Source: Lepidodermella squamata
Lineage: Eukaryota; Animalia; Gastrotricha
NCBI GenBank assembly: GCA_047495785.1
Contig: JBLDXI010000017.1
Span: 2,666,001 to 2,730,000 of the forward strand
Length of the DNA: 64,000 nt
Reading direction: 5' to 3'
Below the pieces are notes generated by a model. It was not told where the DNA came from. It saw only the letters and a list, made by a program, of their open reading frames with translations, and did no database searches. The position numbers and the translations under genes are program-made. The first letter of the stretch is position 1. Each line of letters begins with the position of its first letter. This document shows positions 1 through 51,400 of the stretch, piece by piece.

Positions 1-3000
1 TTGGAGTGGCCGCTATCGGCAGCGCGGTACAACGGGCTAGGTTGCGCATCGAGTTTCGCGCCTTGCGAGATCAGGTACTCAATCACTGATACACTTCTGC
101 CATGAGTGGCTGCCACGCAAAGCGGCGAGCATCGCAAAGCATTTCCAAGGTCCAGAAGGTTTCGATTTCGCGAAAGTAAATATTTCAGAATATCGACATG
201 TCCAAAAGCCGCTGTAAAATTTAAGCAAAGCCATTAAAGGGTGGGTGTGCGAGCGTAGCAGAAAAGTGAGTTGCGCTGCAGAGTGAACGTAGCAATAATC
301 GAAATAGTGTAGCAAGAGCGCGTGTTAAGTAGCACTTAAACGTAATCCGCCGCACTTTCGGCTATTCCGCTGCGCAAACGCGTGTTATGACGCAGCAGGT
401 AGTGCGACGGTCGCAGAAAAGTGGGTGAATGTAGCAAATTTTATTAATATACAAATTTATACCGGGGAACGGTACAATTTTGACAACAAACAGGTACAAC
501 TTTGTAAAAAATTCCAGAAAATCAATTTAGGTGAATTTTTTCCAAATTTTACACCGTTAGAACCCCCTTATCCGAACGGTGCTAGAATTTTTAAAAAATT
601 TTGGAAATTTTGGAAAAATTCTAGAATTATCTACATGAGACAGGCCTCATCGAAGTACCATTTGAAAATCGGTGAAGAAGTCTTTCAACGTAATTTTTTG
701 AGTTGTCAAAATTGTACCTCAAAATCGCTGATTTGCAGGTAATTTACCTGGAACTGGCTCTTTAAAATGTACTTCTCGCACCTCAATAATTACTGGCTAA
801 ACGCCAGCTTCATTTTGGTACGAAAAATTCTATCTAAAACCGCCAAGGTGAAAAGATCCAGAGGGGTGAGGTTCAATTCCAAAAATCAACAGTCAATAAT
901 CAGATATAATCAGATCGATTCTAGTGATCAATCGAGGGGAAATTAAAGCCACAAAAATCATAAAAAAGCATTTAGTCCGAACTGAAGTCACACGTAGCAA
1001 TAGACAGTGGTAGAAGGCAAGCGACGTCAGCCCCACTTGCCTCTGCATGCGGCCCGCCGCCCTTCGTAACGCGCGCCATAGGTAGTCCGCCTCCTCTCAG
1101 CGCCAGTTCCACCGCCTCTCGCACCTACGCACCTACGCGCGCGCTTGAATTCTAAGTTTTGCGCACCTGAGCAGCGCGGTTAAAATTGACTTATTTTATT
1201 TAGGTTAATTATAACCCTTTTATTACATAGCCGCGCGAGCGGGATAAATTTTATTACTTCTGCCATCACTTCACCGTTTTATTCCACTTATCACATTATA
1301 AAATTCGTGTTGAAAATTCAATTAATTGGTAATTAAAACAGTGCTTTGGATTAGATTAGATTTGATTTGACTTGATTTAATTTTCAAAGCCGCTCCGATT
1401 TGTGAAAACCTCTTTAAAAAAGGGACATTGATTGATGTTGATCGATTGATATCAAAGGGTTACATTCGAATAATTTAGCGGTTTTTATACCAAAATAAAA
1501 TTCATTTGATTCTCTATCGATTGAATATGGGGTTGCAGTTGCCGGTACCTTGGCCGAAGCAACCCGCCAACAACCGCAGCGCGTCGCGAAAAAACAACTT
1601 AAATTTTGAAATTTTTCGATCAACCTTTGACGAATATCGACATAAAATTAAATGTAAATTAAATGTAATTGAGGCGTTTTCGGTTTGCTACGTTCACTCA
1701 GCTTTTTGCTACAATACCTCAGATATGCTACGTAACACCGTGTGGTGCTACATTCACTCAGTTTTACGAACATTTAGGTAATTCGTTACGCAACACACTT
1801 TTCTGCTACGCTCACTCAGGTTTATGCAGCGCTCGCCATTAAATCTATCGAAAATTGTAAGATTTAATGTAAACGGACACAAAAAAGTGCATAACTTGCG
1901 ATAAAAATTGCATTTTTGGCCAAAATGGCCAGCATGAGTGCGATGTAAAAAAGAGACAAAATAGTAGGGGATAAACTTATACCCGCCAAGTGGAAAGCTG
2001 TGTTCCTGTGTAATTGAGCACCGCTTTGAGCAGTCACATTTGCGCCGTTTTCAACCAAAATTCGTACAGTAGACAGATGACCTGCGACTACGGCAACCAT
2101 CAACGGGGTCATTTGATCATTTCTACGAGCTTCGATATTCGCTCCCCGACCAATTAACAGCTGCGCAACATCGTCAGCGCCGGCAGAGGCGGAAACCAGA
2201 AGCGGCGTATCTTTCTTCCCATTTTCAGCCTCCAGCTGTCCGATAGGATCCCGGTTCAGGAAAAATTCAACAACTTTTACATGGTTCTTCCGAGCCGCTA
2301 CATGAATAGGCAAGTCAAGCCCGGTTACGTTGTCAAGACTATCACTACACTGACTGACAACATCAGCTCCAGCATCGATCAGTAATTTGACTGTGGGTAA
2401 GTGGCCGTTTGCAGATGCCGAACATAACGAGGATTTACTGTCGCTGATTCGGTCAAAATTCACAGTTTGAATAGATTTCTCTTGTATACCTTGGCCAAGC
2501 TTTGCAGCCGTATCTAAACCACTAGTCGAAACAGTCGTGGTTGAACCGAGCTCTGCAAGCAGCTCAATCAACTCGTCAGGTCCTTTTCGAAAGGAAGCAG
2601 TTACATTACGCGCGTTTTTCGCCTCGAGTAGGCCTTTGTCTCGCTGAACCAAGTAGCGTATTACATCTCTTTTACCTGACAGGGAGCAAATGCTCGGCGT
2701 GTCACACGACAAAACTGCGGCGTGAATGGCTAAATCGCCATCGTCGTTATTGCTTCGCTTTCGAATGTCTGCTCCATGGGAAATGAGCAATTTCACCATT
2801 TCCAAGTTACCCGTGTTAGCGGCAACCATCAACGGGGTCCAGCCCTTGACGCCGAATTTGTCAACCGAAGCATTGAATTCTAGTAGAATTTCAGCAATTT
2901 CCATGCGCCCGACTAACGCTGCTTGAAAAAGAGGAGTAGCACCCAAGTTATTCGCGTAATCAACACAATCCGGCCTCAATTGCAGCAAACATTTCAACAC

Positions 3001-6000
3001 TTCGGTTTGATTGGTCAAAGTAGCCAGATGAACCGCTGCTTGGCCCCTCACGTCCGTAGTTTTGGCGAATACATCAACGTCTTTGAGCGATAACAAGAAT
3101 CTGACTGTTTCAATGTGGCCGTTAATGGTTGCTACCATCAGTGGTGTATAGCCAGGTATTTTCTGGCTGTTGGCTCCGCTTGATTTTTCGGCTTGAGCCG
3201 ATAGCAAACGTTTCGCTACTTTCGCCAAATATTTTACAACATTGACTTGGCCATTAGCTGCGGCTAGATGCATGATTGTTTCTTCCTTTTCTTCAGATGC
3301 TTTTTTATCACCAAGTTTTGCGCCTGCTCTTCGCAAAGATTTCACAACGGACAGATGCCCATTAGCAGCGGCTGAAATAAAAATAAAATAAAAATTAGAG
3401 CGACTCATTTCACGATTAATCTTTGCAAATCGGCGGAAACCAGCAGATAACGAAATTTTAAAGAACTGGGAGGAACCTAATTTCCCCGGCTTTTTGGGAA
3501 AATTCCAGTACATTTACAGAAATTTACATAAATTACCGCTAAAATTCTACTCAGTTTTCAATATGATGGCTGCTCATCATTACTCAAACAGCGCGGCTCG
3601 AAAACGACATTTGAAAAAATGACACTTGAGCAATGTTTGGGTTTGGTGCCAACCTTTGAAATTTGATTCCTTTTCATGAATTCTTCGGATGAGGAGGGTT
3701 TACTAAATATTTTGGTTTGCCCCGCCTTCTTCTAAACTCGAAACGGTAGAGACGCCCAATCGCAAGGAAAAAATTGCTTAATTCTCAAATTATGGATATC
3801 CGAAAAATGTAAACAAATCGGCGCAAAATTACCTGCTGCGATCGGAGTCCGGCCATGTGGGCCACGCGCTTCAATATTGGGACGGTAACCCAGCAAAACT
3901 CGAACTAATCGCGCCTTCCCGTGGTTAGCAGCCGTCCAAAGCAAAGAGCCCGTGTCCGAATCAGAGTCCAGCAGTTCAGGGTTTTCTCTCAAAAAATCGC
4001 GAATAACTTTTATTCTACCGCGAGAGGCAGCCAGTTGTAGCGGGGTGAAGCCAGAATCCGACCTAGCAACAAGACTAGCGCCAGTTTTGAACAGCAATAT
4101 CGCAACTTCGCTGCCAGCATCACCAACAACAGAAGCGTGAAGCGGCGTCCAACCGTTTTGGTCAGCCAAGTCTAGACTAGAATTCGACTTCGATGTAATA
4201 AATTTGACCACTTCCAGTTGACCACCGAATGCGGCTTTCCACAGAGGTGTTTCACCCAACGAGTTCCGTTGGTTGAGATAAGCCAGCCCTCCCGCCTTTT
4301 CCAATCTAGATAGCGCTTCTGTGTGACCAAGCATTGCTGCAATATGAATCGCAGTGTTACCTTCCTTGCCAACAGAAGCTTCCAAATCGGCAGAATTTCG
4401 CACCAAGATATCAATAACTATGGCGCGATTCCGAGCAGCAGCTGCCATCAGCGGAGTCCACCCGGAATTACATGTTTCATCTGGCGAAGCTCCAAGTCTC
4501 AACAACAATTCCGCAGATTCAGCTGATCCCTGGTATGCTGCCATCCATAGCGGTGTTTCGCCATTCGCATTTTTCGCCTCAAGCAAAGTTGGCGCTTCAT
4601 TTTGCAGAAATGACACCATTTCAGCTGAATCGCTGGCTACAGCCAAATGCATCAAGGTTTGTCGGCCATGTCTAGCCGTAGTTTTAATCAAAGGGTCGAT
4701 CCCAATCGCTAGAACTTGAGAAACCGCCTCAGTTTTACCCGACAGAACCGCAGCATGTATCGGCGACAGTCCATCGTGATTTTGCGCATTCAACGAAGCG
4801 CCTTTTTCGATGAGAAAATTCATGACATCGAGACGGCCGATTTTGGCCGCTTTCCATAACGCAGTTTCTCCAAAAGCATTTCTCGCCTCTAACAACGAAC
4901 CATTTTTACTGAGAAAATGCTCTAGCATCGTAATTTGGCCATAAACTACGGCGACGTGAACTTCGCGATCTCTAGCTGACGTATCAGTCGTTTGATCCAC
5001 GTCAATATCGGGATCATTTTTTAGAAATTTTACAATATAAAAATTGTTGAAAGCAACAGCAGCTAGATAAGGAGTTAATCCTTCAGAATCGGTCAGGGTC
5101 CAATCGGCATCTTCCATCAGCAAAACTTCCACAACAGGCAAGTGGCCGAGACGTGCTGCGAGCCATAACGCAGTTCGATTGAGAAAGTTACGTTCATCCA
5201 AGAAATCGCGATTTGGACTGATCTCGACTAAATATCGGACCAGTTCGACAAAGCCACTTCTTGCAGCGAGGTGAAGCGCCGTGTTTTTCCTTTCGTCTTT
5301 GTGTGAAGATAATTCAGCTCGGGCTTGATACAGTGCTTTCACAATTTCTGTTTTATTATTCGCTGATGCTGCTAGAAGAGGCGTCCAGCCCGATGGGCCT
5401 CTGAAATCCAGCCTGTCTCGGTGATTAATGCAAGATTTGACGATATTCAAGTGACCACTGTAAGCAGCCAGCCAAAGTGAGGTGGCGTTACCCTCATTCG
5501 GCAAATCCCCGGTACCTGGACTCGCATCCCGCAGCAATTCAAAAGCTTCAAGATTGCCATGAATAGCCGCTTTGTGAATGGGCATATCCTTACAAGTAAT
5601 TTCTCTCGCAGGACTGCAAGTACCAGTCGATTTCGCGTTTACATTCGCTCGATTTCGAAGAAGAATTCGGAGGGTTGAAACTTTCCCAAGAGCTGCGGCT
5701 GCATGTAGGGGCGTCTCGCCAGCCTCATTCACCACGTTTAGTTTTGCGCCCTTAGCTATCAGAAAATTCAAGACTCGATCATTACCCGAAGCAGCTGCTC
5801 GGAATAAAGGAGTTTCCCCTCTTGAATCCTGCATTTCCAACAAAGACTGTTCTTCTTCAATGAAAAGCTGAACGAGCGCAATACTACCAATATTGACAGC
5901 TTCATGAATCGAAATTTTCTGGTTCGTTCTATCCGCGGGTAAAACTTTGTAAACAGCCAAGTGTTCGTTTTTCAAGGCGATTTTAACCGCGTCGAAAGCG

Positions 6001-9000
6001 TTTACATTAGCAATTGCCGCATCAGCTTTTCGACTTAAAAGAAACTCAACAGCTTCGACATGCCCAGCAGATGCAGCTTTCCAGAGAGGCGTTTCGCCAT
6101 TCGAATTCACCTCATTTATATCGTCGAAAGAATCGATCAGTAGTTTGAGCAAACTGACATGGTTATGCAGAGCCGCGTAGTGAAGGGCCGTGTTACCATC
6201 CAGCGATTTCGCTTGAACCAACTTTTTATTTCCAATAAAATTTTCCACGATTGATATCCGGTTACGAACTACAGCCGCTTGAAAGGGCGTCAGGTTTTGA
6301 TAACAAGCTGTAGTCACGTCACTATCCTCAATCAATTTCGTCGCGAATTCGATATCGCCCATGTACATCGCCAGCCATAACGGCGTTTCTCCATAGCCAT
6401 TTCTCGCCTTAACAAGGCTAGGGTTCAAACTAAGCGTGTTTAAGCGATTTTCCGAGCCGTATTTGATGGCTAAATGAAGAGCACTTAGCTCGCCATCGTG
6501 AATTTTGGTTTTAGCCTGTTTGATACCCTCCCCATGATGTTGAATAAGATTTTCCAGCGAGCCCTTGTCCCCGCTGATTGCAGCAGCCAAGTATGGAGTA
6601 ACGCCGTTCGAATCGCTGAATTGCAACAGATCCGCAGGTGTTTCATTGAGAAAAAGGCTAACAGCGTCGGTTTTACCATTTCGAGCCGCAATTACCAGCG
6701 CAGTCGCATTGCTGCATGTTAATTCGTCATATTGAGCAAAATTATCTTTAATTAAATCTGAGATGACAAGAGTGCGACCACTTTCAGCCGCCAAGTGTAG
6801 GGCAGTTTTGCAATCGCTCGCTTGATTGCTTCTCGCGTGAATATCAGCCCCATTCTCGCGTAAAAATGTCAGCATTGAGGATATTCCGAGCTTCGCCGCT
6901 AATAAATACGGGGTTAAACCTTCGTCATTCCTAACATCGATCGGCAAACCGCGTTCTATCAACCTGGAAATTGCGAACTTGTAAGCAACCCGAACCGCAG
7001 CATGTAGAGGGGTGTCTCCTATACGATTAGTTGAATTGATCAATTCAGGCGCCGAATCCAGTATTAGGTCAAACAACTTATCGTTGCGAGCAGCGGTAGC
7101 AAGGTGCAACGCGGTGCCGCCATAGGCGCGAATCCACCTTAATGAGGTGATTTCAAATCCATCTTCGAGCATATGTTTAACATTTTTCAAGTCACCCTTC
7201 CTCAACTTTTCCAAAAATTCATCATTTTCCTGCACATTCAAGTTGAGGTTATTCAGGACTTTGGATTTCGCCTTATTCCCTTCAAAATCGACCTGGTGTA
7301 ACAAATCAGGCTCAGTATTGATAACATGTCTCGCAATTTCCATGCAATTTGATTCGGCAGCAATGTGTAAGATGTTAAAATCCATCTCAACGGGCCCAGT
7401 GCATCTCGCAAAAATATCGGCGCCGTGTTTCAACAAATATAGGACAAGCGGCGGGTGGCAAATCGCGGCAGCCTCGAGTAAAGGCGTTCGTCCAGTATTA
7501 GCGCGAACCTCAAGCGAAGCGCCAGCTCGAACTAGCAACTTAGCGATAGCAATATGCCGGTTTGCTACAGCTTCATACAAGACGGATCTGCCGTTTGACC
7601 TGGATTCGATATTTGCTCCGTTGTTGATTAAGAATAACGCGACTTTCACACTGCCGATGGATACGGCTAGAAAAAGTGGAGTTTCGCCGCGGCCATTTAC
7701 CTCGTCCAGATATGAAGATTGCATCAAGAGAATGCTAAGTGCCTTGGTTGATTTCCCGCGAACTAGAAAAAACGAAAGAATAGAATAAAAGGTGAAATTG
7801 CAATTTTCAAAAGACAGATTATCAGAGCATCAGTTCTGATATTTTTAACATGACTTTACCTGCTATGTGAAAAGCCGTTTCCTGGCTCTGTGCAGCTTTC
7901 AACCCAGCGTCGGCTCCATTTCGAAGCAAAATACGCATAACTCCAAGGTGATTAAATTTTGTAGCCAGCATCAGTGGAGTCAGTGATTCGCCGCATCTCA
8001 CATCCTTCTCTGCTTCTTTCCAGCACAGGAAATGAGCTATCTCAGCAAATCCCAACTGTGCGGCCAGGCACAAAGCCGTTGAGCCTTGTTCGTTGGTTAG
8101 TTCAAGCTGGCTTTGGCTGCTATTTCCGCTCAGCAAAGCCGTCAAAACTTTCAATTTACCCGAGCGAACAGCCAAATGAATAGCATAATCCGAAGAATTA
8201 TCCGATTTCGTTAAAACATTCGCGCCTTTTTTCACCAGAACGGCAACCAAATCAGGCCACCCAGACAAAGCAGCGATTTGCAACGGAGTCATCCCGGTCA
8301 TATCAGGGATCTCCAGATCAGATATCCGTTTGCTCAATAAAATTTTGGCGATTTCGTACCGCCCTAATTTAGCTGCCAGCCACAGCGGTGTTTCATCTCT
8401 GTCATTTCTCGTAATTTCTTCAACTTTAGATGATAGAAGATCAACCAGCCTGGTATGTCCCGATTTTACCGCCAGGTGAATTGGCGTGTCTCCATTTGCT
8501 AGATCTCTTGCGTTAACATCCGCTCCTCGGTCGATCAACATTTCAGCGATTTTCAGCATATTTGTGTTACTCGCAACCATCAGGGGAGTTCGACCCCTAA
8601 TATTTCTAGCTTCAATTTCGACGCCTTGTTCTAAGAGATAGTCAACAATTTCTGACGAATTCGCTCGAACTGCGATGAAAATCGGCGTCTCTAATTTCTT
8701 ATCACGGGCTTCGAGATGCTCAAATCTCTGATCTAGAATAACTTTAACCAACTCCAAATGGCGGTAAGTTATCGCAGAGTGAATGGCTATGGCTCCACCG
8801 TCCTCTGGAACAGTGCTCCGTTCATCCAAGTCGACACCTTTGGAAATTAAAAGCTGCAGAGCTGGCACACTTCCGGATTTTATGACCCATTGTAGCGGCG
8901 TCCGCCCAGTTACATCGCGTTTATTCAGATCAACTTTCCCACTGATTATCAAAGTTTCCATAGAAGCGGTTTGACTGGCGTTCGCAGCGGCTGTGAATGG

Positions 9001-12000
9001 TGTATGTGATTGGTTATTCGCAATAGTTGCATCAGCACCTCTCTTCAGCAAAGTTTTCACAGCCGATACATGACCCGACTTGGCAGCTTTGAACAACGCT
9101 GTTTCCCCAGATATATCTTGCGAGTCCAGAAGACTTGGTTGTAGATCAAGAAGCAAATCTGTGACTTCGGCCCGGCCATGCCGCGCAGCCAGATGTAAAG
9201 CATTTTCAGCTGATTTTGGATCAACAATCAAGCTGGCCCCGTGATCAATCAGAGCGCGGATTGTCGACAGCCGGTTTTGAACAATGGCGACAGCTAGAGG
9301 GGTCTGATTCGACTCTCCAACAACGTCAACGTCAGCTTTAGCTTTAGCTGACAAGAACAATTTTACGATTTCGGTATGGCCATAGTAAGAGGCCAACCAC
9401 AAAGGTGAGTTGCCCTTTTTATTCAAAGTTTGTACTAGTTTCCGATCGTAATCGATAAGAACGACAACTACGCCCGAGCAATTGTTGATAACAGCAAGAT
9501 GCAGAGCGTTATTTCCGTCGTTTTCCGAGTTGCTATAGGCAGACGCATTGGCATAACCTGTTTTCAGCAGGGATTGAACTATTTCAGAATGACATTTCGA
9601 ACTGGCTGCTAACAGAGGAGTCCAGCCAAAACGCCCCGAGCTGTCTACGATAGGTCGATACGAGAGAAGAAATTGAACGCTCGAAAATTGTCCGGAATGA
9701 GCAGCAATCCATAGCGGCGAGTTTCCATATCGATCATGAGCTTCGATTAGACCAGCTTTAACTGAGAGTAAAAACTTGAGGCTATTAATTTTGCCCAAGG
9801 CTGAAGCTGTGTGGCTAGCCATTTGCCCTTCACTATTTGATTGAACTGTGATGATCTCTGGGTCATGCTCAAGGAGCAGTTCCATCGCTTTGACGTGATC
9901 TCGCGAGGCAGCTGCAAGATAAAGTTGGATCTCAAGTATCAAAAAATGACGAAATCCTCACCTGCATGAAAAGGCGACCATGAATTAAGGCCTAAGCACC
10001 GGGTATTCGCTTTCATCCGCAGCAAATGAGAAATCACAGAAATTCGATTTTCAGCCGCGGCTCGCCATAAGGGCGTGTTGTTGTAAGCATCTCTGTACTC
10101 TAAACCTGCTAAATTTTGCCGGACGTAATAATCAACAACTTCTGTGTATCCGGACGAAGCAGCCAGGTGAATTGGAGCACTGAGATCGGAGGAGCATCGA
10201 ACATCTGACGAAAATCCATTCTTCGCTAACAGTTTAACTACAAGCAAGTGGCCGTTGAAAGAGGCTGCGTGAAGAGCATTCCAACCAAAACGGCCAATAA
10301 CGTCGGTTGAAACTTGCTTCTTGTTCAGGAAGAAACTTACAGCATCCCTTGACCCGCCGTAAGACGCGAGCCAAAACGCAGTTTCATTGAACTTATTACC
10401 AGCCTCGAGACTAAATTGCCACTTTATGAATAAGCGCAACATTTCAAGTTGACCGAACAATCCAGCATAATGTATTGGAGTATTTCTTTGATCATCTGCG
10501 AATTTTACTAATACTCTGTCGTTTTGGAGCAGCCTTTGAGCAACTTTCACTCGGTTATACATAGCAGCTACTGCCAAGGGTGATAGGCCAGAGCTGCATG
10601 TTTCGTTATAATTAGCACCTAGTTCGATCAGCGTTTGAATGACTGCTACGTTGCCGAGCTGAGAAGCCCTCCAAAGAGCTGTTTCGCCGTTGTCATTTCT
10701 CGATTCCAACAGTGATCTATCCATTTTGATCAACTCTTGTAAAATATCAATTTGCATATAAATGGCAGCCAAGTGAAGAGCCGAGTTTCCGCCATCGATA
10801 TTATGGCTTTTGGCGTTTATATCAGCGCCTCTTTCAGCTAAAAACTTTAGCGACTTCTTTTGGCCTTTAGCGCAGGAAGATAGCAACGGAGTCCAGCCCA
10901 ACGTATTTCGCATCTCCAACAGTTCAGGGCTCTTCGCTAATAAAACGCTCACCGCTTCCATATGCCCATTATTTACAGCTAGATGAATTGCAGTGTTTCC
11001 ATTATCAGCCGGGCAACTTCTGGCGATTATACTAGCCATTCTCTCGATTAACGAAGAAACGGTCCGTGTGTGACCTGATGAAGCAGCCGCAAGTAATGGT
11101 GTCCAGTCGAGGCGGCCAGGAGCTTCGATATCGGCCTCAAACAAATCGATCAGCAATTCCACTATCCTGGTATGGCCATTCAAAGCCGCCAGCCAGAGTG
11201 GAGTAGCATTGTTCGCAGATTTCGCTTCGACTGCATTTAACCGCTTTCGCAGCAAGAATTCGACAACTTTGAAACGACCAAAAGAAGCTGCTAAATGAAT
11301 CGCCTGTTCATCCGCATTACTTCTAACGGAGACATTGGCGCCTCTATCAATCAATTGAGTAACTGAATCCAAACTACCCGAGGCAGAAGCAGCTAGAAAC
11401 GGTGTCCAGCCCTTAATATTGGGTTTCTCCAAGCTGGCCCCACGTTTCAACAGGAAGTCTATTATCTGTGTCTGATTATGTGAAGCAGCTCGAATCAAGG
11501 GTGTGTCTCCAAAAAGGTTCGGCAAATCAACTAATGTTGGATCGTTTTTCAACAAAAATTCAATCGTTTCTTTGTTACCATTATCTGAGGCAATATGAAT
11601 AGCAGAATTACAGCCATCTTCTGAGCTCGAACACGAATTCACACCTACTCCCTGCTTCATTAAAAATTCGATAACGCCGACCTGGTTAGCAGCTGCTGCG
11701 GCCATAAATGGAGTGTACCCTAGGGTACCCTGAGGACTTGCATTTGCGCCTAAGCTCAGCAAATACTCGACCGCTTTAACCTGACCGTTTTCGCTCGCAA
11801 GAAATAACGGAGTATTTTGGTTCTTATTAGCGATTTCAAGTAGACCTCGTTCCCTGGAAATCAGCGTTCTCAGAACTTGAAAATGGCCGAATTTCGCAGC
11901 CAAGTGGGCTGCTGAATTGAAATCGTCGTTAACGGGGTCGCCACGGGCCCAAATAATCTTCGAACCGCCCATATCGATGAGTGCTTCTACAACGTTATTT

Positions 12001-14518: not shown

Positions 14519-15370
14519 TCATGAACGAAAGCCTTTTAAACAATGAGAAAAAGTAAAATATACAAACGATGAGTCACGCTTTTCAACTTCGGCTTCTTTT
14601 TCGGAGCTTAAAACCCAAGGCGCAGATTGCACATTCGGTGACATTGGAATGATGCCGGAAGTTTCCAGGATAGACGATGAGAAGAACGGCTCGTTTTGAG
14701 GAAGAGGGCTCAAAGGGCAAAATCCTGAACAATCAATGCTTCTTGGGGGCAGCTGAGGATTTAAATTTATCCTCAAATGATGACCTTTGGGAGACACAAT
14801 AACTCGCCGGTCGATTCTAAACAAGCGGTCAACACCTTTCAAGGTTGACTCGTTAACTCGAATTAGGACCCAGATATTACTGGGCGGTAAGTCGAAAGCT
14901 TTACTCAATTTAGGAAAATTTTCAACAAGTTGCACAGGGAATCCAGATGGGTCGCTGACATCGCGCCAATCGTTAGCTGAACTTGCCGGGTCGTAACCAT
15001 TTGGTAATTCGATGGTAACCGTCAGTTTCGGGGTGAATAGCGTTCCGCCAAAAACCAAAACAACTTCACTTACAATGCTGGAACAAATTGAGGCTGACAA
15101 GCCACCAAACATTTCGTCAGCAGACGATATGAATTTGGTTACTCGTTTCCCGAACTCCGAATTCTAATAATAGAACTTTTAATCAACATACTCCCCAGCC
15201 CCATAAAAACTCACATTAGTAAACTTTTTCCGCATGTCTTCGTAGCCATGAGGAATATGGCCGTTAACATAGATCAAATATTTTATGAGAATTTCAATGT
15301 GCTGGGCTAAAATTCGTCCATCTTTGGCAAGCTGATCGATCTCAAGCGTAACGACTTCATTCTGAGCCAT
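14519..15370 (-). CDS. MAD2L1BP: p31comet / MAD2L1-binding HORMA-domain protein
   Basis: Two exons (15215-15370, 14519-15163; 51-bp intron). Motifs LIKYLIYVNGHIP, VVLVFGGTLFTPK and C-terminal LKGFR match the p31comet family. Confidence 0.75.
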
Positions 15371-31660: not shown

Positions 31661-31846
31661 CGCGAAAGGATGTAGCAGGAATAAGTGCGATGGCGGAAAT
31701 GGCAATTTCCTTTCTTGACATCTCTATGCTTTTTTTTTAAAACTTGATTTCTGTTTGATTCATCCAGTTCAATAATAAGAACAATCTTTTTTATATAAAA
31801 CTATAATTTCTTGTTGTCATTTTGTAGGGTAAATTTTATTTAAAAT

Positions 31847-39412: not shown

Positions 39413-42400
39413 ATGATTACACGCTTGTTGCTACTCATTTGCCTGAATTTATTTGGCGGAATCCATGCTGGCTACATCGACTCAACTGTGTATTTGGCGG
39501 CTTCAAATAATGCATTGACCATTCTGAAGCTGATGATTGCCATGGGTGCTGATCCTGACAGTATTGGCCAGGATGGCCAGTCAGCTCTCATGGGTGCTGC
39601 TGCGAATGGCCATCTTGAAACTTTCAAATATTTGGAGTCTCGCGGTGCGCGAATCGATTTTAAAAGTCTTGTGTCAGGCGAGACAGTATTGCACATTGCT
39701 GTCCGTCACGGCCAAGATGTGCTTGTAGACTACCTGTTAAGTAGCAATGGTATTTCGCTGCTAGAGGAAAAAGATCTGAACGGAAATTCGCCTTTAAATT
39801 TGGCAGTAATTAATGGCAAAGAGTCTGTGCTTGATGAATTGTTGGCGAAAAATCCTTCTCTTGAAACAAAAAATCGTTACGGACGAACCCCTCTGCTAAA
39901 TGCTTGCGCGTATGGTCATTTATCGATATTACGCCGCCTGGTTGATGCCGGAGCTGACGTTCTTGCTCGAAGCGGCAAAGAAGATGGTGAAAATACAGCT
40001 GCTCATTTGGCAAGTTATTATGGCCACCGGGAAGTATTGGAATTTCTTATCGAACTTCGACCATCTTTCGTTGATGATAAAAACTCAGCTAATGAAACAC
40101 CACTGTTTGTGGCAGCTTACATGGGCCAGAAAGATGTGGTGGCGTTGCTGATGCCGAAAGGAAAAAAAATGCAGCAAGCTACTGATCGATTCGGTCTAAA
40201 TCCCTTACTTGCTGCCATTAGGTTAGTCTTGCTTAGCCTAAGTGAGGAACTTTCCCTAAATATTTGTTTATTGAAGCTTTGGACGGTTGAATGTTGTTGA
40301 AACCATGAACGGAAAAGAAGGGAGTACATCTGACCGTAGTGCTGCCATCTTTGAATCAGCCGAAGCTATTCATCTCGCTGCTCTATTGGGATATACGGAC
40401 ATCCTTGCGAATTTGATTGCGGGAGATGAAACATTGCTCGAAGCACGCGATATTAACGGGTCATCACCTTTGAATAAAGCATCTTCTCTTGGTGTTATCA
40501 AATCCGTCCAATACCTGATAAGTAATAAAGCGAAGATTGAGTCCGTCGACAAGTTCGGCCTTACCCCACTTCTGTCGGCATCAGCTAATGGCCATGCAGA
40601 TGTTGTGAAGTACTTGATTGAGAATGAGGCTAATGTCAACTTCCGAGGGCCCAATGGGCAGCTTTGTGTTCATATAGCTGTGGCCAATGGTCACATTGCT
40701 GTTTTGAATACAATTTTGAGCTTCCACCGTGAATTGATCGAGAGTAAGAATGACTTGGGCGAAACGTGTCTCCTCTTCGCGGCAAGAGTAGGCCAGGCGG
40801 AAGCTGCTGAGTTTCTTATCGACAATTATCAAGTTGATATAGAATCTCGCGATATGAATCACTTCACGCCTTTAATTTCCGCATCGTTCCGTGGTAACTT
40901 GGCTGTGTTAAAAGTTCTCCTAGGCAGAAATGCAAACCTTGACGCCTCAATATTAGGGGTCGACCAAGACACAGCAATTCATATCGCCAGCCGCCAGAGT
41001 CAAGTTGAGGCCATTAAAATCCTAGTTGGCAATGTGCCCAGGTTGCTTGATACGAAAAATGCTCGCAATAACACCCCAATTTGCGTTGCAGGAGAATCGG
41101 GTACCATTGAGGTAATCTCAGAGCTTCTTAAACTCGGGGCTGAAATTGAAACTAAATGCTTGAACGAATCTACACCTTTAATTTTGGCGGCTGTGAATAA
41201 TCAACCACGTGCCATCGAATTTCTGCTAGAGAAAAGGGCCAACATTTTGGCGAAGACAGGCGTTGATTTCAATGGTAGCACCGCTTTGCATTTAGCAGCT
41301 GAACTAGGCCACAGTGATGCAATGCGAGCACTGTTAAGGAACTCGGATTCTCATATCGTCGAAGCTAGAAATAACTTCAATAGAACACCGCTTTGGGTAG
41401 CTGCTTTTGCTGGACAAGAGCAGTCTGTCAGAGTTCTCCGGTTCCACAATGCTAATCTCGAAGCTAGTGATCTGTTGAACAGGACACCCCTGCTAGCTGC
41501 TGTGTTGGCAAACAAGGCGAATATCGTTCGAATTTTATTGGGAGAGGGCGCAGATGTGAATGCGCTTACCAGCAAGGACGACTTCAGTCTAACACCTCTA
41601 ATTTACGCCGCTAAATTAGGATTCAGCGACGTTATTTCTGCGATGCTCGACAAATATCCTCAGTTGGTTTCGCAAAAAAACCCGGGTAACGATGGCAATA
41701 CAGCTTTGTGTGTAGCTGCTTTTGAGGGTCAGCTGAAAGCTGCAGAAACTTTACTGCTAAGGAAATCACCGACAGAGGGGCGGTGTGAATATGGAAGGAC
41801 GGCCTTGTTAATCGCTGCCGCGGCGGGCCACGTTCCTGTAGTCCAAATATTGCTGACTTCGGGTGCTGACGTGAACGCCCGTGGCGACAATGAACACGAT
41901 CGCGGTAATACAGCCGCTCATTTGGCTGCGAAATTCGGTCATGTCAATGTCTTGAAAGTGTTGATTCGTTCGTCGCGCAGCCTACTCGAGTCAGAGAATG
42001 CGGACCGATACACGCCGTTATGGCTCGCTGCGGACCAGGGCCAGGCTAGAGTTGCTGATTTCCTGCTAACAGAAGGCGCAGCAAGTAGCGCTCAAGGTTC
42101 GCGAGGTTACAGCCCGTTCCTCGCAGCGGCTGCGTCGAATAAACTCGACGTACTCAAAGTCCTGGTCTCTCGCAAGGTCGGCGATTCTTCGAAGAGCAGC
42201 ACCGAGGATGGTGAGAACATGGGAGTACACGTTGCCGCGATCAAGGGAAATGTCGACGTGGTTCAATATTTATTGGAAGGCAAACCAGCGTTGGTCAACA
42301 AAACTAACAAGCATGGTAATTCTCCGTTGATTCTCGCAGCTGCAAATAGCCACGCCGAAGTGGTCGACTTGCTGATAAAGTCCAAGGCCGATCTGGAAGC

Positions 42401-45400
42401 GCCGGGTCAGTTCGGCTGGACAGCTTTATTAGCGGCAGCAGCCTCCGGTCATTTAGCTATGACCCGTCATCTCATCGGCGTTCATCATGCGAATTTCAAT
42501 GCTAAAAGCAACGACAGCAGTCTGGCGGTTCATTTAGCTGCTGAATCCGGTCATTTTGAGGTGGTTGAGTACCTTTTGCGAGCAAATTTTAATGAGCTCG
42601 AGTCGAAAACAAGATCTGGCAACTCGCCACTTTGGCTTGCAGCAAGTCGTGGTCACCTGCGAACTTGCGAACTCTTAATTCGTAATTTCAGTGCTAATCT
42701 AGAATCGACTGGTCAAAGCGGCTGGACCCCGTTATTAGCGGCCGCTGCGAACGGCCATTTAGCGATTGTTGCATCGTTACTTGAGCACGGAGCTAACATT
42801 CTAGCAACAAGTGACGTGAAAACCAGCCGAAATTTCGCTATCCATTTAGCACTGAATAATGGCCATGTGAAAATTGGTGAGCTACTCATTGACTCAAATG
42901 GCAAATTGCTGGAAGCTCGAAACGATTTTGGTTGGACTCCTATTCTTTCAGCTAGCGCTTATGGTCAAGTGAATTCTTTGGATTTCTTGCTTCGTCGGCG
43001 CGCCGACTTGTCCGCCCGGAGCTTTGCAATCGACGGCGGAAACTCAGCCTTGCACTTGGGTGCGATCTACGCGAAGGTCAACGTGCTAACCATGTTATCG
43101 AAGGCGAAACGGGAGCTGCTGAACGCAAGAAATGACAACGGCGAAACAGCGCTGTGGCGAGCGGCTCAACTCGGCAATGTTCGAATGGTGGAAAAGCTGA
43201 TCGAGTTGGGCGCACCTGTCGACTGGCAGTGCCCACTCGGCTGGTCGGCTTTTAGCGCTGCCGCGGCTCATAACCGCGTAAAAGCCGCCAAGGCCCTGCT
43301 GCGTAAGGGAGCTAAAATGGTCGAAACGTTTGACGCAGCCGGAAATAACCCCGTACATCTTGCTGGTTTATACGGGCGAGTTCGAGTCATTGATTTTTTC
43401 GAAAAATCGCAAGTCGACGTGGGTTGCAAGAACAAGTTTCAAGAGACTCCTTTCTGGCTTGCGGCGTATGGCGGGTCCGATGCGCTTGTGGCGAAATTGT
43501 TGAAGGATGGTAATCACAATAATTTTCGAGGTCGGAATGGCTGGACACCGTTACATGCCGCTGCAAGCAATGGGCATATCAGAGTGGTAAAGCGATTGAT
43601 TGACAATGGCTTTTCGATTGATTCTCGTAGTTCGGTCGAAGACCTTTTGAGTGCTCCGATCCACGTGGCTGCATCGTACGGGTACGGCAATATGGTTAGT
43701 TACATCGGCAAAATTGACAACAATGCGCTTGAACTGAAAGACGCGCGAAATAATACGGCTTTTCATCGAGCAGCGGCCGAAAATCGATTAAATGTGGTTG
43801 CTGCTTTACTGCGATCTTCAGCGAATACCAAGGCTATTGGCCAGTACTCATATACTCCTTTTCATGCAGGTTAGTATAATTCTATCAATATCAAGCCCTG
43901 CTGTAATGTGTCTTTTAAGTAACCAGCTAAAGAAAGTAGTTAGCTATGACGATTGAAGAAGATCCGAGAAGCTTCGATTCGGGGGATTACGGGAATCTTA
44001 GCGAAATTTTTAGGTCACGCTGATAGCATTTTCCTGTGTTTAATTTTGCTTCTTATTCCAAGAGTGGAAATCATTCATTAATGCGTTTGTTGGTTTCAGC
44101 TGCTGCTAATGGCCACACGAAGATCATGCAGATGTTTATCGGCCAAAATCCCGATATTCTAAACGCACGAACTTTGACTGACCAGCACTTGGCCATTCAC
44201 ACGGCCGCAGCCCTTGGAAAAGACCTGAGCTTAAATTTTTTGCTGGACACCAGGTCAGATTTGATTGAAGCTCAGGATCGTTATGGAAATACTCCGTTAT
44301 GGGTTGCTGCTTATTCCGGGCAATTTGCCAGCGTGTTATTGCTGCTTTCACGTATGGCGAACGTTGAAGCTCGTGGGCGCTATGGCTGGACTCCTTTATT
44401 AGCTGCTACCGCAAACGATCATGCTGATATCGCCGAATTGCTACTAAAAAATGCTTCTGCCAATGCATTAGCTCGCAGTGATGTGATCTCGGGTGAAAAC
44501 ACCGCGCTACATGTTGCGGCTCAGTTCGATTCTGACGACTCTGCCTCAGTCCTATTGAGTCTCGCGAGGCAACTAGTCGCATTGAAAAATAACAAAAACA
44601 ACACAGCACTGTGGGTGGCTTCATCGCTCGGAAATACCAAGGTCCTAAAGGTCTTGCTTGATTCTGATTCCGATCGGATGATATCGGATGAATCTTCATC
44701 CTCTTCCCCAATTGTTGTTGCTGTGGAGAAACAACAGCTAACCGCAATTCGAGTCTTACTCAGCTACGGCAGTGGTATAGACTCGGGGAAGAAAAACGGT
44801 GAAAATGTGCTTCATTTAGCAGCGTCTGAAGGGTTGATCGAGTCTGGCAAACTTTTGGTTGAAATTCGGCCGGAACTTGTTAATTCTCGTGATCACGTCG
44901 GCGAGACTCCACTTCACAAAGCTGCATCGTCGGGCAATGTTGCTGTGGTGTCGCTGTTACTAAAAAATGGCGCCGATGTTACGATAACTGCGAACAATAG
45001 TTACACCCCATTCACCACCGCCGCTGTTGCCGGTCAAATCGGAGTGATGGAGGAGCTGGTAAATAGTGGCAAAATCGATTTCAAATACCGAGATACAACG
45101 CAGCGGACCCCGCTCTACTGGGCTGTTTTCCTAGGCAGCGTCCCGGCTGTTAAAATTCTGATCGAAAAAGGAGCCGATCCGGAGGATCGAAGCCCGATAC
45201 CGGCCGATGACGGCGCCATGTCAATTCATCTTGCCGCTCATTACGGCCACTTGAATGTCGTTAGTTTCTTAATTAATGTCAAGAAAGACTTGATTGATGC
45301 CAAGTCGAACTCGCGTGAAACGCCCTTGTTTTTCGCCGCGAAAAAGGGCCATGTCGAAGTTGTTCGACTTCTGCTTTCGAAAAATGCGAAGAAGGAAATT

Positions 45401-48400
45401 CGGAGTGCCTCCGCTCGAACGGTGCTACACGAGGCGGTCTTTGCTAATCAAACTGAAGTCGTTTCGGCTTTAATCGAAAACCAGGTCGATATATTAGCGA
45501 CTGCCGAGGATGGAAACACAGCACTTCATATAGCGGCGAAAACCGGGTTCCTACCCTTGGTTAAACTGCTAACCAACGTAATAAAATTGGGAATTAAAAA
45601 TAATTTGGGCCAAACTCCTCTGTGGCTGGCGAGTAAATATGGGCGGTTAGAAGTAGTCGAGTTCTTGAGCGATCGCTCTAATGAAATTGGCGTGGCCGAT
45701 ATTGATGGTTGGACCGCCCTGCACGCCGCTTGCTTACACGGAGAGAAGGCAACCGTCGAATTGCTAATTCGAAGAGGCGCTAATATTTTTGCGAAAAGTT
45801 CGGAACATAAAAACTCCGAGATACCCCTTCACTCGGCTATTCGATCGAAAAACTTGGCTGTTGTCAAGGTGGTTCTTAGCCAGGACGCGAGCAAGCAGCT
45901 TGAAGTTGTGACCCGCAACGGTTCGACTCCGTTATGCATTGCAGCTGAAGTGGGTTCTGCTGAAATTTTGGAGTATCTGCTCAATCAAGGTGCGGCCATT
46001 GAAGCCAAGTGCCAGTTTGAGGCAACTGCTATCATGATAGCTGCTGGTAAAAATCACCTGGCAGCCGTAGAAGTTCTCGCGAATCGTGGGGCTAATATTT
46101 CCGCCGAGTTGCCGTCTTCTTACGGCCGGAGCTCGGCTTTTCACCTTGCAGGTTTGGTATAGGGAAACACGGATCGTTGTTGGCATATAATTTTTCAATT
46201 TTTATTCAGCGAAAAACGGGGCAGTTGATGTTTTGCGTTATTTGTTGCGCGCAAATCCAGCCTTCCTCGACGACGCCAATTCACGAGGCGAAACGCCGCT
46301 GTACATTGCGACAGTTGAGAATCAAATCAACGCGATGGAGTTTTTGATCAGTTCCGGAGCTAACCTAGAGTCGCGTTTAAATAACCGCCCGCCGCTGTTT
46401 CAGGCGGCATCTTTAGGACACGAAGAGGCTGTCAGATTGCTGATAGCTGCCGGCGCAAACACCGAATCCCGTGGTCCTCTCGGACGCACTGCTTTGCTTG
46501 AAGCTGCAGGTTGTTATTTGAGTATTTATCGGATTCAAATATTTAATTGGACCTATAACTTAGGGCAATGTCGAGTGAAAGTTGTGGAGGCTCTGTTGCG
46601 AGCCGGCTGCGATTATATGGCGCGGAGCTATCGTCAGGACTCTGAAAGTTCAGCACTGCATTTGGCTGTCACGAGCCGCTGTGTCGAGGCAATTAAAGTT
46701 ATGACAGATTTACACCCTGAAATGCTGAATTTACGAAACGCAGTGAACCTATCCGCCCAACAGTTGATCGACCGATCTCCTGCGATAAGAAAATCGCTGA
46801 GTTCCGAGCGAGACCTTTTGATTTCGGTTGTTGAATCTGGCGAAGCTTCAACGCTGAGGACGCTCATTCGAAATGGCGCTGATGTATTGACGAAAAAGTC
46901 GACGCATCGAGGTGGCGAAGGTCTGGTCCACTTGGCGATTTCTAGAGGTCATCTCAGAATCGTCAAGCTTCTCTGGGAGACTGATGCAAATTCTCTGAGT
47001 GTTGTCGATAACAACGGCAATACCCCGCTGCACGCAGCTGCTCTAAGCGGACATTCTGAAATAGCCGAATTTTTGCTTGAGAAGGGTGCTAAAATAGAGG
47101 CTCGCAACATATATGGCTGGACACCATTTTTAACAGCGATGGCAGCTGGACAAATGGAAATGGTGAATTTTTTAGAAGAACGTGGCGCTAACATCTACGC
47201 CAGAGCTAATAAAATGGGCAATTTAGAAACAGCTATTCATTTAGCGGCGAAAAATGGTCATGTGAAATGTATGGAAGAATACATGCATCGAATGCTGGAG
47301 AAGAAGAAGTACAAAAAACACGGTTTGCATTAATCAAATTTCGCAGTCGAACCTAGTTTATATTTTAATATATTCCAGGTATCGAGGCGAAAACTTTGCG
47401 AAAAGAGACGCCGCTACACTTGGCATCAGCTAATGGAGCCTTAAAAGTTGTTCGAAATCTCTTACAGCGTCAGGCTAAAATCGATGTGCGAGACGAGATT
47501 GGACAGACTCCTTTCATCGTAGCCGCTGCTAATGGTCAGTTGGATGTTATGCGGTTTCTGTTAGACAAGGGAGCCGATGTTTTAGCGAAAACTTCGACGA
47601 GAGGCAGCGATGGCTTGACGGCGATTCACATGGCCGTTATCAAGGGTCAACATGGCGCCGTTGAGCTTTTGATTCAACGCAACCACGAACTGATTGACTT
47701 GCAGAGTGGTCTCGGCGAAACGCCGCTGTGGCTAGCTGCGTCGCTTGGTGACGAGAAAATCATAAAACTTCTCGCGTCCGAGGTCGATCTTTCAGCGCGG
47801 TGCAACGCCGGACTAACCCCACTGCATATCGCTACACTCCTGAACAGAATTAGCACTGTCAAGTTGTTGATTAACGCTGGGGCTAATACTCAAGACGGCA
47901 CAGCGCAGGATTCAGCGCAGGATTTGCCTTTCCATCTCGCGGCTATTTACGGCCACATTGATTTGATCAAATACTATAAAAGTATATATAAAAGCGTGGA
48001 AGTTGAAAACGCATTAGGCCAGACGCCACTCTGGCGAGCGTCGTATTTTGGAAGGCTCGAAGCTGTTGAAACTCTTTTGTCATTGGGCGCAAGTTATCGC
48101 CAGGCGGATCATCAGGAATTAACCCCGTTAGAAGCCGCTGCCATGAGGGGCCACCTCAGTGTCGTGAAAGCTTTGTCGGCTAAAGGCAGTCAATCAACTA
48201 GCTCTCGATTGAGCTCATCCTCCCACCCGATTTTCCTGGCGGCTGAATATGGCCAGTTGGAGGTCGTGAAATACTTTTTAGACGTCAATCCATGGTTGTT
48301 GGAGGAGAAAAACTCCAACCAAGAGACGCCGCTTTGGCGCGCGGCTTACGCTGGCCAGTTGTCAGTCGCTGAATTCCTAATCAATCGCCGCGCTGCTATC

Positions 48401-51400
48401 CGCATTAAGAACGTCAAAGGCGAAACGCCGCTTCATGCCGCTGCGAAGAATAACCAGCCGAAAATGGTTGAATTCTTGCTAAAACACGGCGCCAGGGTCG
48501 ATGATGAAACGACCGATGCGAGCGGAGATTTGCCGCTACATTCAGCTGCAAGTTCTGGCCACGTAGCAACCGCTAGGGTTCTGCTTAACCTGAACCCTGA
48601 CCAACTCGAGCTTGGCAACCGGGAGAACAAAACGCCGCTATGTTTAGCCGCTCGTTCAGGTCAAATCGATATGATCAACTTTTTGATTTCTCGAAAGTCG
48701 ACCCTCGACAAGCGGTGTCGTTATGGCCTAACAGCATTTCTGTTCGCCGTAAAACACAATCAGTTAGAAGCCGCTCAAATCCTACTTAAGGCTGGGTCTT
48801 TGATTTCGGCAAAATCTGACTCTGGCTCGCATTCAGATTCAGCGATGCATCTCGCTGCTCGCTACGGACATGTTGAAATGGCTCGATTTTTGCTTAAAGA
48901 ATCGCCTGCTTTTCTCGAGGCATTGAATGGCGATAGTAACACACCCATCCATGTTGCTGCTTCGTCCGGGCACGTAGGCGTGGTTAAATTTCTCGCGGAA
49001 AGCGGGGCTAATATAGCTTTCAGAGGCAATGCCACACTGACACCGTTCTTAGAAGCCGCTGCTGAAAATCATCATCAAGTCATGAGTTATCTACTCGAAA
49101 TTGGGGTGTCTCTATTCGAAACTTCTGATGACGGGTTAAGGAATCAAGCCATTCATCTAGCGGCCCTGAAAGGCCGGCTGGAGACGGTCATCTTTCTGGT
49201 AGAACGTAACTCGAGCTTACGCGAGGCAGAAAACGGCAATGAAGAAACATCATTATGGCTTGCTGCATCAGCGAGCCACCTTAAAGTTATGAAGGCTCTG
49301 CTGGAAAAGGAAGCAAATATCGAGAAACGTAACAGACAAGGCCTAACTCCTTTACTCGGAGCTGTTTATAATGGAAAATTGGACTCTGCGCGATTTTTGA
49401 TTGAAAATCAGGCTGAAATTGATGCGGTCACATATGCGTCTACTGGCTCTCACACTATCATGCATCTAGCGGTTATGAGTGGTCGAAAAGAAATCATTGA
49501 ATTTATCCATCAGCAAAAGCCGCAAATGTTGGAAAAAGTGAATAGTAACGGCGAAACTCCGCTGTGGCGTGCTGCTTATCTAGGCGAGTATCAAGCCAGT
49601 AAAACCTTACTTGGGCTCGGTGCTAACGCGGGGATTCGCTGCAAGTCTGGTTGGACGCCGTTAATGGCAGCCGCTAGCCGGAATCGCGAGCAAATTTGCA
49701 AAATGCTATCCCTAGGCGTCAACTTCCTGCATCATCGCCTCGACGCAGCGACTGAGGATTCAGAGCAAAATCGGCCTGTTCACATTGCGGCGCTATTTGG
49801 CATGGCCGAGGCATTGACCTTTCTAGCTGGTATACAACCTTACGCTGATAGAAAGAACGCATACGGCGAAACCCCGTTGTGGAAAGCCAGTTTCGGCGGT
49901 CATTTGGATGTTGTAAGACACCTTGTTGAAGCCGGCTGTACGTTGAACGCAGTCGGTCGCCAGGGAATGACGCCACTTCACGCCGCTGTTGCCAACAATC
50001 ACTTGCCTGTTGTTGATTATCTACTGCAGAACCGTGCTGATTTGATGGCACGGACTAGTGATCGAAATTTCACGGCAATTCAACTGGCTGCCTCGCTAGG
50101 ACGGGTTGAAATTGTTCAATATTTTGTGAATAAATCGAAAAGTTTACTTGATTTGGATCGCGAAGTTGGAACGGCACCGATGATTGTTGCGATTCATTCG
50201 AAGCAAACTGATGTTGTAAGAGCGTTGATGGCGTTGGGTGGGGATTTCTCCATTCGAGACCAACATGGCAGAACTGCCATTCACGTCGGTAAGTCGTTCA
50301 CTTCGTTCTTACCTGGGATGGAAGTTATTAGTGAAAATTGAGAACGGTAATTGAATGATCAACCTTAATGTAGGGTGCTGAATATCTGGACCACTAAAAT
50401 TGAGTTACCAGTTGTTACATTTTTCCGTTTCTCATCTATTCCGGCCTTTTCTTTTCTTGATCGATACAGATGCCCTTTATAACCATGAAGTTTCTTATCT
50501 TAGCCACCTGGTACCTGGTAGACCAATTTCACCTAAATTTTTTCTCTGGGAAATCTGATACTGGAGCCTCAAATTTAGTGTTGGAACTCTACAATTTATG
50601 ATTTGCACTGGGAAAAATGCAGGGGCGTAAGGCGTAACCAGCTGGTTGTTTTGGTTGGTGGTTTCAAACAACTACCAAAATTAAAACTTAAAAACCGCTC
50701 TTCAGTCTATTTTCACTAGAAAATGGCTCAAATTACTTATAATGTGGAGAAAATGCAAAATTCCCAAAAAATATCCGGAATGTCTCGGACCCAAGTATCG
50801 CGGAACCAAATTTGCCTGTTGCGGAACTTAATTTTAGATAAGTCAAAGGTCGCTTTTCGAATATTTCTACGAAATTCAGGGATTGTTTTGAGTAATGTGT
50901 CCTATACAGAATTTTACGCTGAATTCAAAGATGATTTATTCAAAATTATGCCGATTGATCATAAAATTTTCGAAAGTTCCGAAAGGCCCAAATTTGAAAA
51001 TTGAAAATGCCATAATTTGGTTCCGTTAACAGTCAAATTTGGTTCCGCTAAAAGTAAGACCCAACATTGCTCGCTTCTAACCCTGCTCAATGCATGGCTA
51101 ATTCTCAATTCGTTTGATTAGATGGCCGAATAAGCGCGCATCTATGAAAAGAATAGGAATTTATTATAATGTAAATAGCACCATAATTTTGAAATTCGTT
51201 AGTGAGAGCCTTTCATGTTGCTTCTATTTTCAGCGGCCGCTGCTGGGGACCTAGTAATTGTGGGAAAGCTGAAAGAATACGGCGCCGATCCAGCGCAGAA
51301 GAGTAACTCAGAATCCGGCGATAATCAAGGTTCCGCCATTCATGGTGCTGTATTGAACAACCATTATGAAGTGGTGGAATATCTACTTCAGGCAGACCCG

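Follow-up and report, generated by a model that had tools for sequence, protein, structure and literature searches.

Ankyrin repeats are regarded as intracellular, disulfide-free modules, and designed ankyrin binders are for this reason made without Cys. The closest described systems, namely the membrane-binding domain of ankyrin-R and ankyrin-B, NOMPC and the DARPins (designed ankyrin repeat proteins), are built from 33-residue helix-turn-helix-hairpin repeats; they are cytoplasmic or engineered, carry His in the TPLH motif and an Asx (Asp or Asn) cap at position 32, and possess no paired Cys. We analyzed 64,000 nucleotides of the gastrotrich Lepidodermella squamata (contig JBLDXI010000017.1, positions 2,666,001 to 2,730,000 of the forward strand; hereafter the window), which hold two giant ankyrin-only genes made of the same kind of repeat: gene A (1867-14457, minus strand) and its paralog, gene B (39413-54661, plus strand). 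The initial annotation of the window had claimed that where Cys replaces the His of TPLH, a second Cys usually follows 25 residues later, and this was found to hold for eight of the nine window repeats that carry the replacement. On balance, and with considerable reservation, we favor an intra-repeat disulfide bond in secreted ankyrin solenoids as the explanation of the pair. In the literature that was searched, neither paired Cys nor a disulfide bond is described for these positions of the ankyrin repeat, and no secreted ankyrin-only giants are described in animals.

Paired cysteines in a 33-residue repeat slot

Repeats were placed on a 33-column model derived from the window (G1 x T3 P4 L5 H6 ... 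A8 ... G12 ... L20 ... D31) and anchored on the Ala that is invariant in helix 1, which gave a catalogue of 260 repeats in the ankyrin open reading frames (ORFs) of the window. Column 6 of this model is the TPLH His position and column 31 the hairpin Asx position, corresponding to positions 7 and 32 in Pfam numbering; Cys at these columns is written here as C6 and C31. The window repeats were read from ORF pieces analyzed one by one, and orthologous repeats were matched through the best-scoring collinear alignments. Word searches with gene B exons returned generic ankyrin proteins and one sole true relative, P0001 from an ENA metagenome, at 40% identity. The contig that carries P0001, L001, encodes a complete third homolog, named gene C, which is approximately 40% identical to the window genes.

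All eight C-x24-C repeats quoted in the initial annotation were located in genes A and B with their Cys exactly 25 residues apart, and all eight occupy the 33-residue slot that is usually held by Trp. They fall into five sites, whose states are given below as column 6/column 31. Site 1 is C/C in all three homologs, comprising TVLC..ESKC in gene A (12660-12758, minus strand; Cys codons 12741-12743 and 12666-12668), TPIC..ETKC in gene B (41067-41165, plus strand; Cys codons 41082-41084 and 41157-41159) and the gene C ortholog. The same is true of site 3, with TALC..DVRC in gene A (7987-8085, minus strand; Cys codons 8068-8070 and 7993-7995) and TPLC..EAKC in gene B (45920-46018, plus strand; Cys codons 45935-45937 and 46010-46012). 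Site 2 is C/C in gene A (TALC..EALC; 12039-12137, minus strand; Cys codons 12120-12122 and 12045-12047) and in gene B (TALC..EGRC; 41694-41792, plus strand; Cys codons 41709-41711 and 41784-41786), and F/C in gene C. At site 4, the last pair of gene B (TPLC..DKRC; 48626-48724, plus strand; Cys codons 48641-48643 and 48716-48718) is matched by C/C in gene C with a loop one residue longer, while the gene A counterpart, TSLW..DFRG (5391-5489, minus strand), is W/G. The annotation had described this joint change of both Cys correctly, and its simplest reading is a loss of both residues in gene A, because genes A and B are nearer to each other than to gene C. Site 5 is C/C only in gene A (SSLC..VSQC; 2341-2439, minus strand; Cys codons 2422-2424 and 2347-2349), with M/S in gene B and H/M in gene C, where the orthology of both is weak. 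Eight gene B Cys are invariant across the three homologs, and seven of these lie at column 6 or 31.

Two repeats deviate from this arrangement in their details. The SPLC exception named in the annotation is genuine: the 30-residue repeat at 36-134 (minus strand) has Gln at +25, a hairpin loop three residues shorter and an extra Cys at column 2 (CSPLC), and it is the only window repeat with C6 that does not have C31. The Cys at column 2 might be a substitute partner there, because column 2 covaries with column 31 in generic repeats. In gene C, site 2 (L001:1135-4800, plus strand; ORF residues 489-514) was noted to carry Phe at column 6 and Cys at column 9 (FMAC), with C31 kept. This column 9 Cys could be a shifted partner, or it could equally be coincidence, column 9 being the commonest Cys column in gene C.

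The co-occurrence is real, exceeds chance and is robust to correction for paralogy, as was found when the covariation check proposed with the annotation was carried out. Among the 260 window repeats, eight contained both Cys, one C6 only, six C31 only and 245 neither (Fisher exact test; p = 6e-11), the six confirming that unpaired hairpin Cys exist as had been stated. Restricting genes A and B to 33-residue repeats gave seven with both, none with C6 only, four with C31 only and 57 with neither (p = 3e-7). When each orthologous site was counted once, the corresponding numbers were four, one, five and 78 (p = 2.6e-4). The 123 repeats of gene C showed a weaker association, with two, two, three and 116, respectively (Fisher exact test; p = 0.008). 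In one of its two repeats with C6 only, the loop is longer by one residue and the hairpin Cys comes one residue later, so that the four C6 repeats of gene C comprise two exact pairs and one pair shifted by one residue. An assumption-free spectrum of Cys-Cys spacings across the three homologs peaked at a distance of 25 residues (11 pairs), and in 2000 shuffles no spacing rose above eight and none of the 2000 reached 11.

Similarity scores computed without columns 6 and 31 were 0.32, 0.25 and 0.19 among C/C repeats, against 0.31, 0.29 and 0.28 between C/C and Trp-type repeats. The C/C repeats are not each other's nearest relatives, and duplication of a single ancestral C/C repeat was therefore ruled out as their origin.

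We assessed the same columns in 230 other ankyrin proteins with 5,023 unique repeats, where C6 occurred 54 times and C31 75 times and the two were never found together. This comparison supports a pairing that is specific to the family of genes A, B and C. A scan of metagenomes recovered 11 loci, all of them generic ankyrin genes at no more than 37% identity, and none had C6. In a large search that yielded 144 giant ankyrin proteins, six repeats contained both Cys, and four of these belonged to a single protein, P0416, from JGI metagenome 3300009745 (locus L013:380-14884, plus strand; one ORF). P0416 resembles the proteins of genes A, B and C in being giant (4,834 residues) and ankyrin-only and in following the rule that C6 is joined by C31 or C32. 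The hairpin Cys is present in six of its nine C6 repeats (four at C31 and two shifted by one residue to C32), and no repeat has C31 without C6. The Cys of P0416 cluster at columns 2, 6, 12 and 31/32, and columns 16 and 17, which are usual buried positions, have none. It differs from the three homologs in that it is not collinear with them (15 separate stretches at approximately 32% identity), lacks Trp-type repeats, is intronless and has no evident signal peptide. Because P0416 is unrelated and follows the rule nonetheless, the rule arose at least twice.

Secretion signals and the nature of the pair

Gene B opens with a signal-peptide-like segment at 39413-39469 (plus strand) that combines a short basic n-region with a hydrophobic core and, before residue 20, a small-x-small site, and gene A with one at 14413-14457 (minus strand) in which Met is followed by a core rich in Leu and Ile; the equivalent in gene C begins at position 283 of L001. 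The hydrophobic core after the first Met measures 12-16 residues in all three, candidate -3/-1 cleavage sites lie at residues 15-19, and the Kyte-Doolittle maxima over nine residues are 2.9 for gene B, 3.4 for gene A and 3.5 for gene C. These segments are unrelated in sequence and alike in character, and each shares one ORF or exon with the first ankyrin repeats, which start approximately 25 residues past the start codon. In an AlphaFold2 model of the gene B N-terminus, residues 1-20 formed a detached lone helix with a predicted local distance difference test score (pLDDT) of 42-55, and the ankyrin fold began near residue 25 with pLDDT above 84. Scanning the three proteins for membrane-spanning segments revealed nothing of that kind besides ankyrin helices and read-through past the ends of ORF pieces. 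By these heuristic measures, the products of genes A, B and C are predicted to carry a cleavable signal peptide and to have the features of secreted proteins.

Cys usage was also distinctive. Outside columns 6 and 31, Cys accounted for 0.71% per column compared to 1.95% in the background (odds ratio 0.36; p = 2e-25), a 2.7-fold depletion that was strongest at the usually buried columns 9, 16 and 17. Columns 6 and 31 were themselves enriched 3.4- and 3.6-fold. Such usage fits passage through an oxidizing route. Taken with the signal-like N-termini and the lack of a membrane segment, it lends the extracellular premise support that is independent of the Cys pairs.

Published structural work bears on the placement of the two columns. 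Conserved contacts join the TPLH His to the hairpin Gly in its repeat, G(i), and to the Thr in the following repeat, T(i+1) (PMC4687027, table S2), and the His has been classed as a core residue that is partly exposed on the concave face (PMC8415598). Ankyrin position 32 is counted among the concave positions and has an Asx cap, and contacts between the start and the end of one repeat have been described (PMC8415598). The published His contacts thus lie in the same neighborhood as column 31, while the pair of columns 6 and 31 is itself unlisted in these sources (PMC4687027, PMC8415598). From these contacts together with background covariation, we infer that the two columns share the same corner of the repeat. 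The mutual information between columns 6 and 31 in 1,534 background repeats of 33 residues ranked 281 of 528, compared to rank 11 for columns 6 and 29 and rank 2 for columns 2 and 31; generic ankyrin covariation therefore gives the contact no confirmation.

The sequence of events that we propose is as follows. The proteins of genes A, B and C would enter the secretory pathway through their cleavable N-terminal signal peptides. In the 33-residue slot, column 6, which is usually Trp in this family, would stand at the base of the hairpin, and column 31, normally Asp, Asn or Gly, would be the first residue of the turn. Cys at both columns would come within bonding distance and form a bond inside the repeat in the oxidizing secretory pathway, stapling helix 1 to the hairpin covalently in place of the Trp or His packing and the Asx cap. 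A plausible origin of the pair is a single-base change from Trp or Phe to Cys at column 6 (TGG or TTY to TGY), tolerated where C31 pre-existed. That C6 almost always occurs with C31 and C31 also occurs alone would be explained if the change at column 6 follows an existing C31. The co-occurrence with its conservation and family specificity, the signal-like N-termini, the depletion of Cys elsewhere and the canonical ankyrin fold are observed, and the side-chain distance, the bond in vivo and this order of mutations are deduced.

As is typical of disulfide-stabilized extracellular domains, the Cys co-occur and are conserved as pairs. Such domains also have few or no unpaired conserved Cys, and in this respect the family departs from them at three sites. 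Trp at column 6 with a lone C31 is found in all three homologs at 10590-10688 of gene A (minus strand; gene B partner at 43140-43238, plus strand) and at 4464-4562 (minus strand; partner at 49550-49648, plus strand). The third site is a 32-residue repeat of gene A with W6 and a hairpin Cys at 6297-6392 (minus strand), which has its gene B partner at approximately 47714-47809 (plus strand) and is again W/C in gene C. Two of these three sites resemble each other unusually closely (identity 0.42-0.45), a hint of an ancient internal duplication.

Several observations weigh against a disulfide in a secreted protein. The three W6/C31 sites retain their lone Cys in genes A, B and C, no second conserved Cys lies within 70 residues of them, and gene C has F6/C31 at site 2. 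The hairpin Cys is therefore kept without a column 6 partner, which shows that it is tolerated when unpaired. C6 without C31 occurs twice, in the window repeat at 36-134 and at residue 156 of the gene C ORF at 8725-11127. The link of column 6 with column 29 rather than column 31 in generic repeats leaves the contact between columns 6 and 31 as a deduction. P0416 follows the rule without an evident signal peptide, and the pair may therefore not need an extracellular setting. None of the three best alignments shown by a PDB sequence search, all to ankyrin-B or ankyrin-1 chains, had Cys at both positions. The independent events are few, at approximately five sites in two species, and the signal-peptide calls are heuristic, being based on hydrophobicity and the -3/-1 rule. 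The extracellular disulfide proposed in the annotation is accordingly upheld in part: the co-occurrence, its specificity, the conserved pairs and the signal-like starts speak for it, and the lone W6/C31 Cys and the two C6 repeats without C31 speak against it.

The strongest alternative, which we consider unlikely yet worth serious attention, is that the two Cys are in contact in the reduced state as a small, hydrophobic, non-covalent packing pair, so that an oxidizing compartment would be unneeded. The good tolerance of C31 alone under Trp at three conserved sites would agree with this, as would the pairing of Cys in P0416, where a signal peptide is not evident. However, packing leaves unexplained why 10-11 of 13 C6 repeats have Cys at column 31 and none has Ala, Ser, Val or Thr there, and why C31 was found in none of the 54 C6 repeats that belong to other ankyrin proteins; the oxidizing route is also favored by the signal-like N-termini and by the overall depletion of Cys.

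It is somewhat less probable still that the hairpin C31 is the primary feature, acting for example in intermolecular cross-linking of solenoids or in other thiol chemistry, with C6 as a secondary cap or quencher. C31 is both commoner and more conserved than C6: it is invariant at the three W6/C31 sites and at site 2, whereas column 6 varies (C/C/F at site 2 and W/C/C at site 4 in genes A, B and C), and the lone sites have no intramolecular partner. Against this, multimerization is without evidence, and column 31 of the 33-residue repeats evolves slowly with any residue, such that DDD, GGG and NNN triplets across the homologs are conserved like CCC. Because of this slow evolution, conservation of the lone Cys need not mean a thiol function and does not by itself single one out.

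A metal-binding or redox-switch site appears improbable. Cys that co-occur as pairs in proteins that are not secreted often form metal or redox sites, and P0416 may be such a protein, but no third or fourth ligand (His, Cys, Asp or Glu) is conserved among the C/C repeats, and a pair of thiols by itself is poorly suited to be a structural metal site. That the association arises spuriously from paralogy or small numbers, for which one could cite that three of the eight window pairs are common to genes A and B and that the independent sites number only about five, is the least credible reading, given that the site-level test remains significant, the C/C repeats are not mutual nearest relatives, the background repeats contain no pair and the rule recurs independently in P0416.

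Gene architecture, relatives and neighboring genes

The window has a GC (guanine plus cytosine) content of 42-49% and genes with long exons and short introns. Gene A was recognized from the ORF list and its translations in the pieces 14457-14134, 14176-13580, 13541-9942, 9957-7825, 7829-3735 and 3513-1867 (minus strand), and it probably extends past 1867 toward an exon at 3-233. Gene B comprises 39413-40297, 40275-43871, 44027-46159, 46191-47330, 47369-50338, 51206-52693, 52985-53812, 53940-54341 and 54299-54661 (plus strand), and frame-compatible GT-AG introns are present at all of its piece junctions. Short gaps and frame changes interrupt the long ORFs at matching places in the two genes. 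In collinear pieces genes A and B are 35-47% identical, the pieces of gene A also align collinearly with L001 within this range of identity, and those of gene B remain collinear with L001 up to the last L001 exon. A run of masked or unknown bases (X) lies near the start of L001:8725-11127 (plus strand). Because of this run, L001 lacks orthologs of the first repeats in the gene B ORF at 47369-50338, and one apparent extra C/C match to L001 is an off-register alignment.

Only Ank families of Pfam were matched by genes A and B, and all tested ORF pieces scored far above the cut-off of the Pfam clan Ank (PF00023, PF12796; for example, 135-283 bits compared to 27.3). Genes A and B follow a three-repeat rhythm of approximately 103 residues (for example, in 40275-43871, plus strand), which is conserved in gene C. 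It consists of a His-type repeat, mostly of 34 residues, a Trp-type 'GETPLW' repeat of 33 residues and a Leu/Met-type repeat of approximately 36 residues that often starts with GWTPL. The initial annotation had regarded Trp...Gly as a common alternative pair. This part of it was not borne out, as column 31 is Gly, Asp, Asn or Cys across the whole 33-residue class whatever stands at column 6, and a size-compensating Trp/Gly pair was thereby ruled out.

An AlphaFold2 model of residues 231-560 of the gene B ORF at 40275-43871, which contains sites 1 and 2, gave a canonical ankyrin solenoid (pLDDT 94). Foldseek aligned this model to the 24 repeats of ankyrin-B (4rlv) with a template modeling (TM) score of 0.86 and a root-mean-square deviation of 2.5 A, and the TM scores to 4rlv and ankyrin-1 (8cs9) spanned 0.84-0.86. 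The best explanation of genes A, B and C is that they encode ankyrin-only solenoids of approximately 4,200-4,600 residues and 120-130 repeats. Membership of the cytoskeletal ankyrins, the PP6 regulatory proteins ANKRD28/44/52 or TRPN/NOMPC was not supported, there being no collinear orthology and no ZU5, UPA, death or channel domain among the Pfam matches, which were to Ank only.

The best matches to named proteins were 24-33% identical across generic repeats only, and a HMMER single-sequence search of 1.84 billion representatives returned no further collinear relative. Further cluster members and neighboring contigs proved to be from the same species as L001; one contig of that species, L014, carries a nuclear-receptor gene upstream. 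In the window, a PRISE-family reductase (56689-57915, minus strand) adjoins a PLC-beta gene (60066-63319, minus strand) that is closest to protostome invertebrates at 45-62% identity. The organism of L001 keeps this PLC-PRISE gene order (L015-L018), with PLC 68% identical and the giant ankyrin gene on another scaffold, and it is therefore a related animal. A human origin of the window was rejected on account of its exon and intron lengths, its invertebrate-like PLC-beta and the nuclear-receptor gene of L014. Between the two organisms, the ankyrin genes (40%) have diverged much faster than PLC (68%).

Two shorter genes at 20749-24333 and 25277-26903 (plus strand) apparently combine Sushi/CCP and ankyrin modules. 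Their order is a signal-like start (ORF 25277-25537), Sushi/CCP, a Ser/Thr-rich acidic linker and ankyrin repeats. Sushi/CCP matches above the Pfam cut-off were found in ORFs 20749-21216, 21226-21555 and 25458-25742, and the linker and ankyrin repeats are in one ORF at 21740-23647 (plus strand). No membrane-like segment was detected between the Sushi domains and the ankyrin repeats of these two genes; if the exons belong to a single transcript, these ankyrin repeats lie in the same compartment as extracellular Sushi modules. This apparent combination counts in favor of a disulfide in genes A and B. The ankyrin repeats of the two shorter genes contain neither C6 nor C31. An AAA-ATPase exon was noted at 17609-18406 (plus strand). 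Several sizeable ORFs had no Pfam match, namely 14519-15112 (minus strand), 16146-16766 (plus strand), 29871-34144 (plus strand), which includes a 518-residue ORF at 31847-33403, and 59025-59630 (minus strand).

Comparison with known repeat proteins

If the disulfide is real, the ankyrin fold would be used in oxidizing compartments, the paired positions would be ready-made for stabilizing engineered ankyrin proteins, and genes A, B and C would represent a new class of giant extracellular invertebrate proteins. A much bolder picture, which we hold to be unlikely as a whole, is that these proteins would be the first example in an animal of natural ankyrin solenoids outside the cell, giant secreted rods in which occasional disulfide staples at Pfam positions 7 and 32 stiffen the superhelix and lone hairpin Cys beside Trp cross-link the chains into a polymer or matrix, with the staple transferable to engineered binders.

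Compared to ankyrin-R/B, NOMPC and the DARPins, genes A and B are set apart by a predicted signal peptide, approximately 120-130 repeats with no other domain, the His/Trp/Leu rhythm and the Cys pairs at positions 7 and 32. The alpha-latrotoxin family (approximately 20 ankyrin repeats), which was among the sequence matches, likewise comprises large ankyrin-rich animal proteins, and latrotoxins act outside the cell that produces them. They possess a large N-terminal non-ankyrin domain, whereas the proteins of genes A, B and C do not and their repeats begin from about residue 25. The similarity is one of generic repeats, and nothing suggests a toxin function for genes A and B. The principle of secreted repeats that keep Cys in conserved pairs and have few free ones is shared with Sushi/CCP, EGF and Cys-capped leucine-rich repeat ectodomains, and Sushi/CCP modules are encoded beside ankyrin exons within the window itself. 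Genes A and B differ from these ectodomains in using another fold, in keeping lone conserved Cys and in carrying the pair in only about four of some 130 repeats, as an occasional staple.

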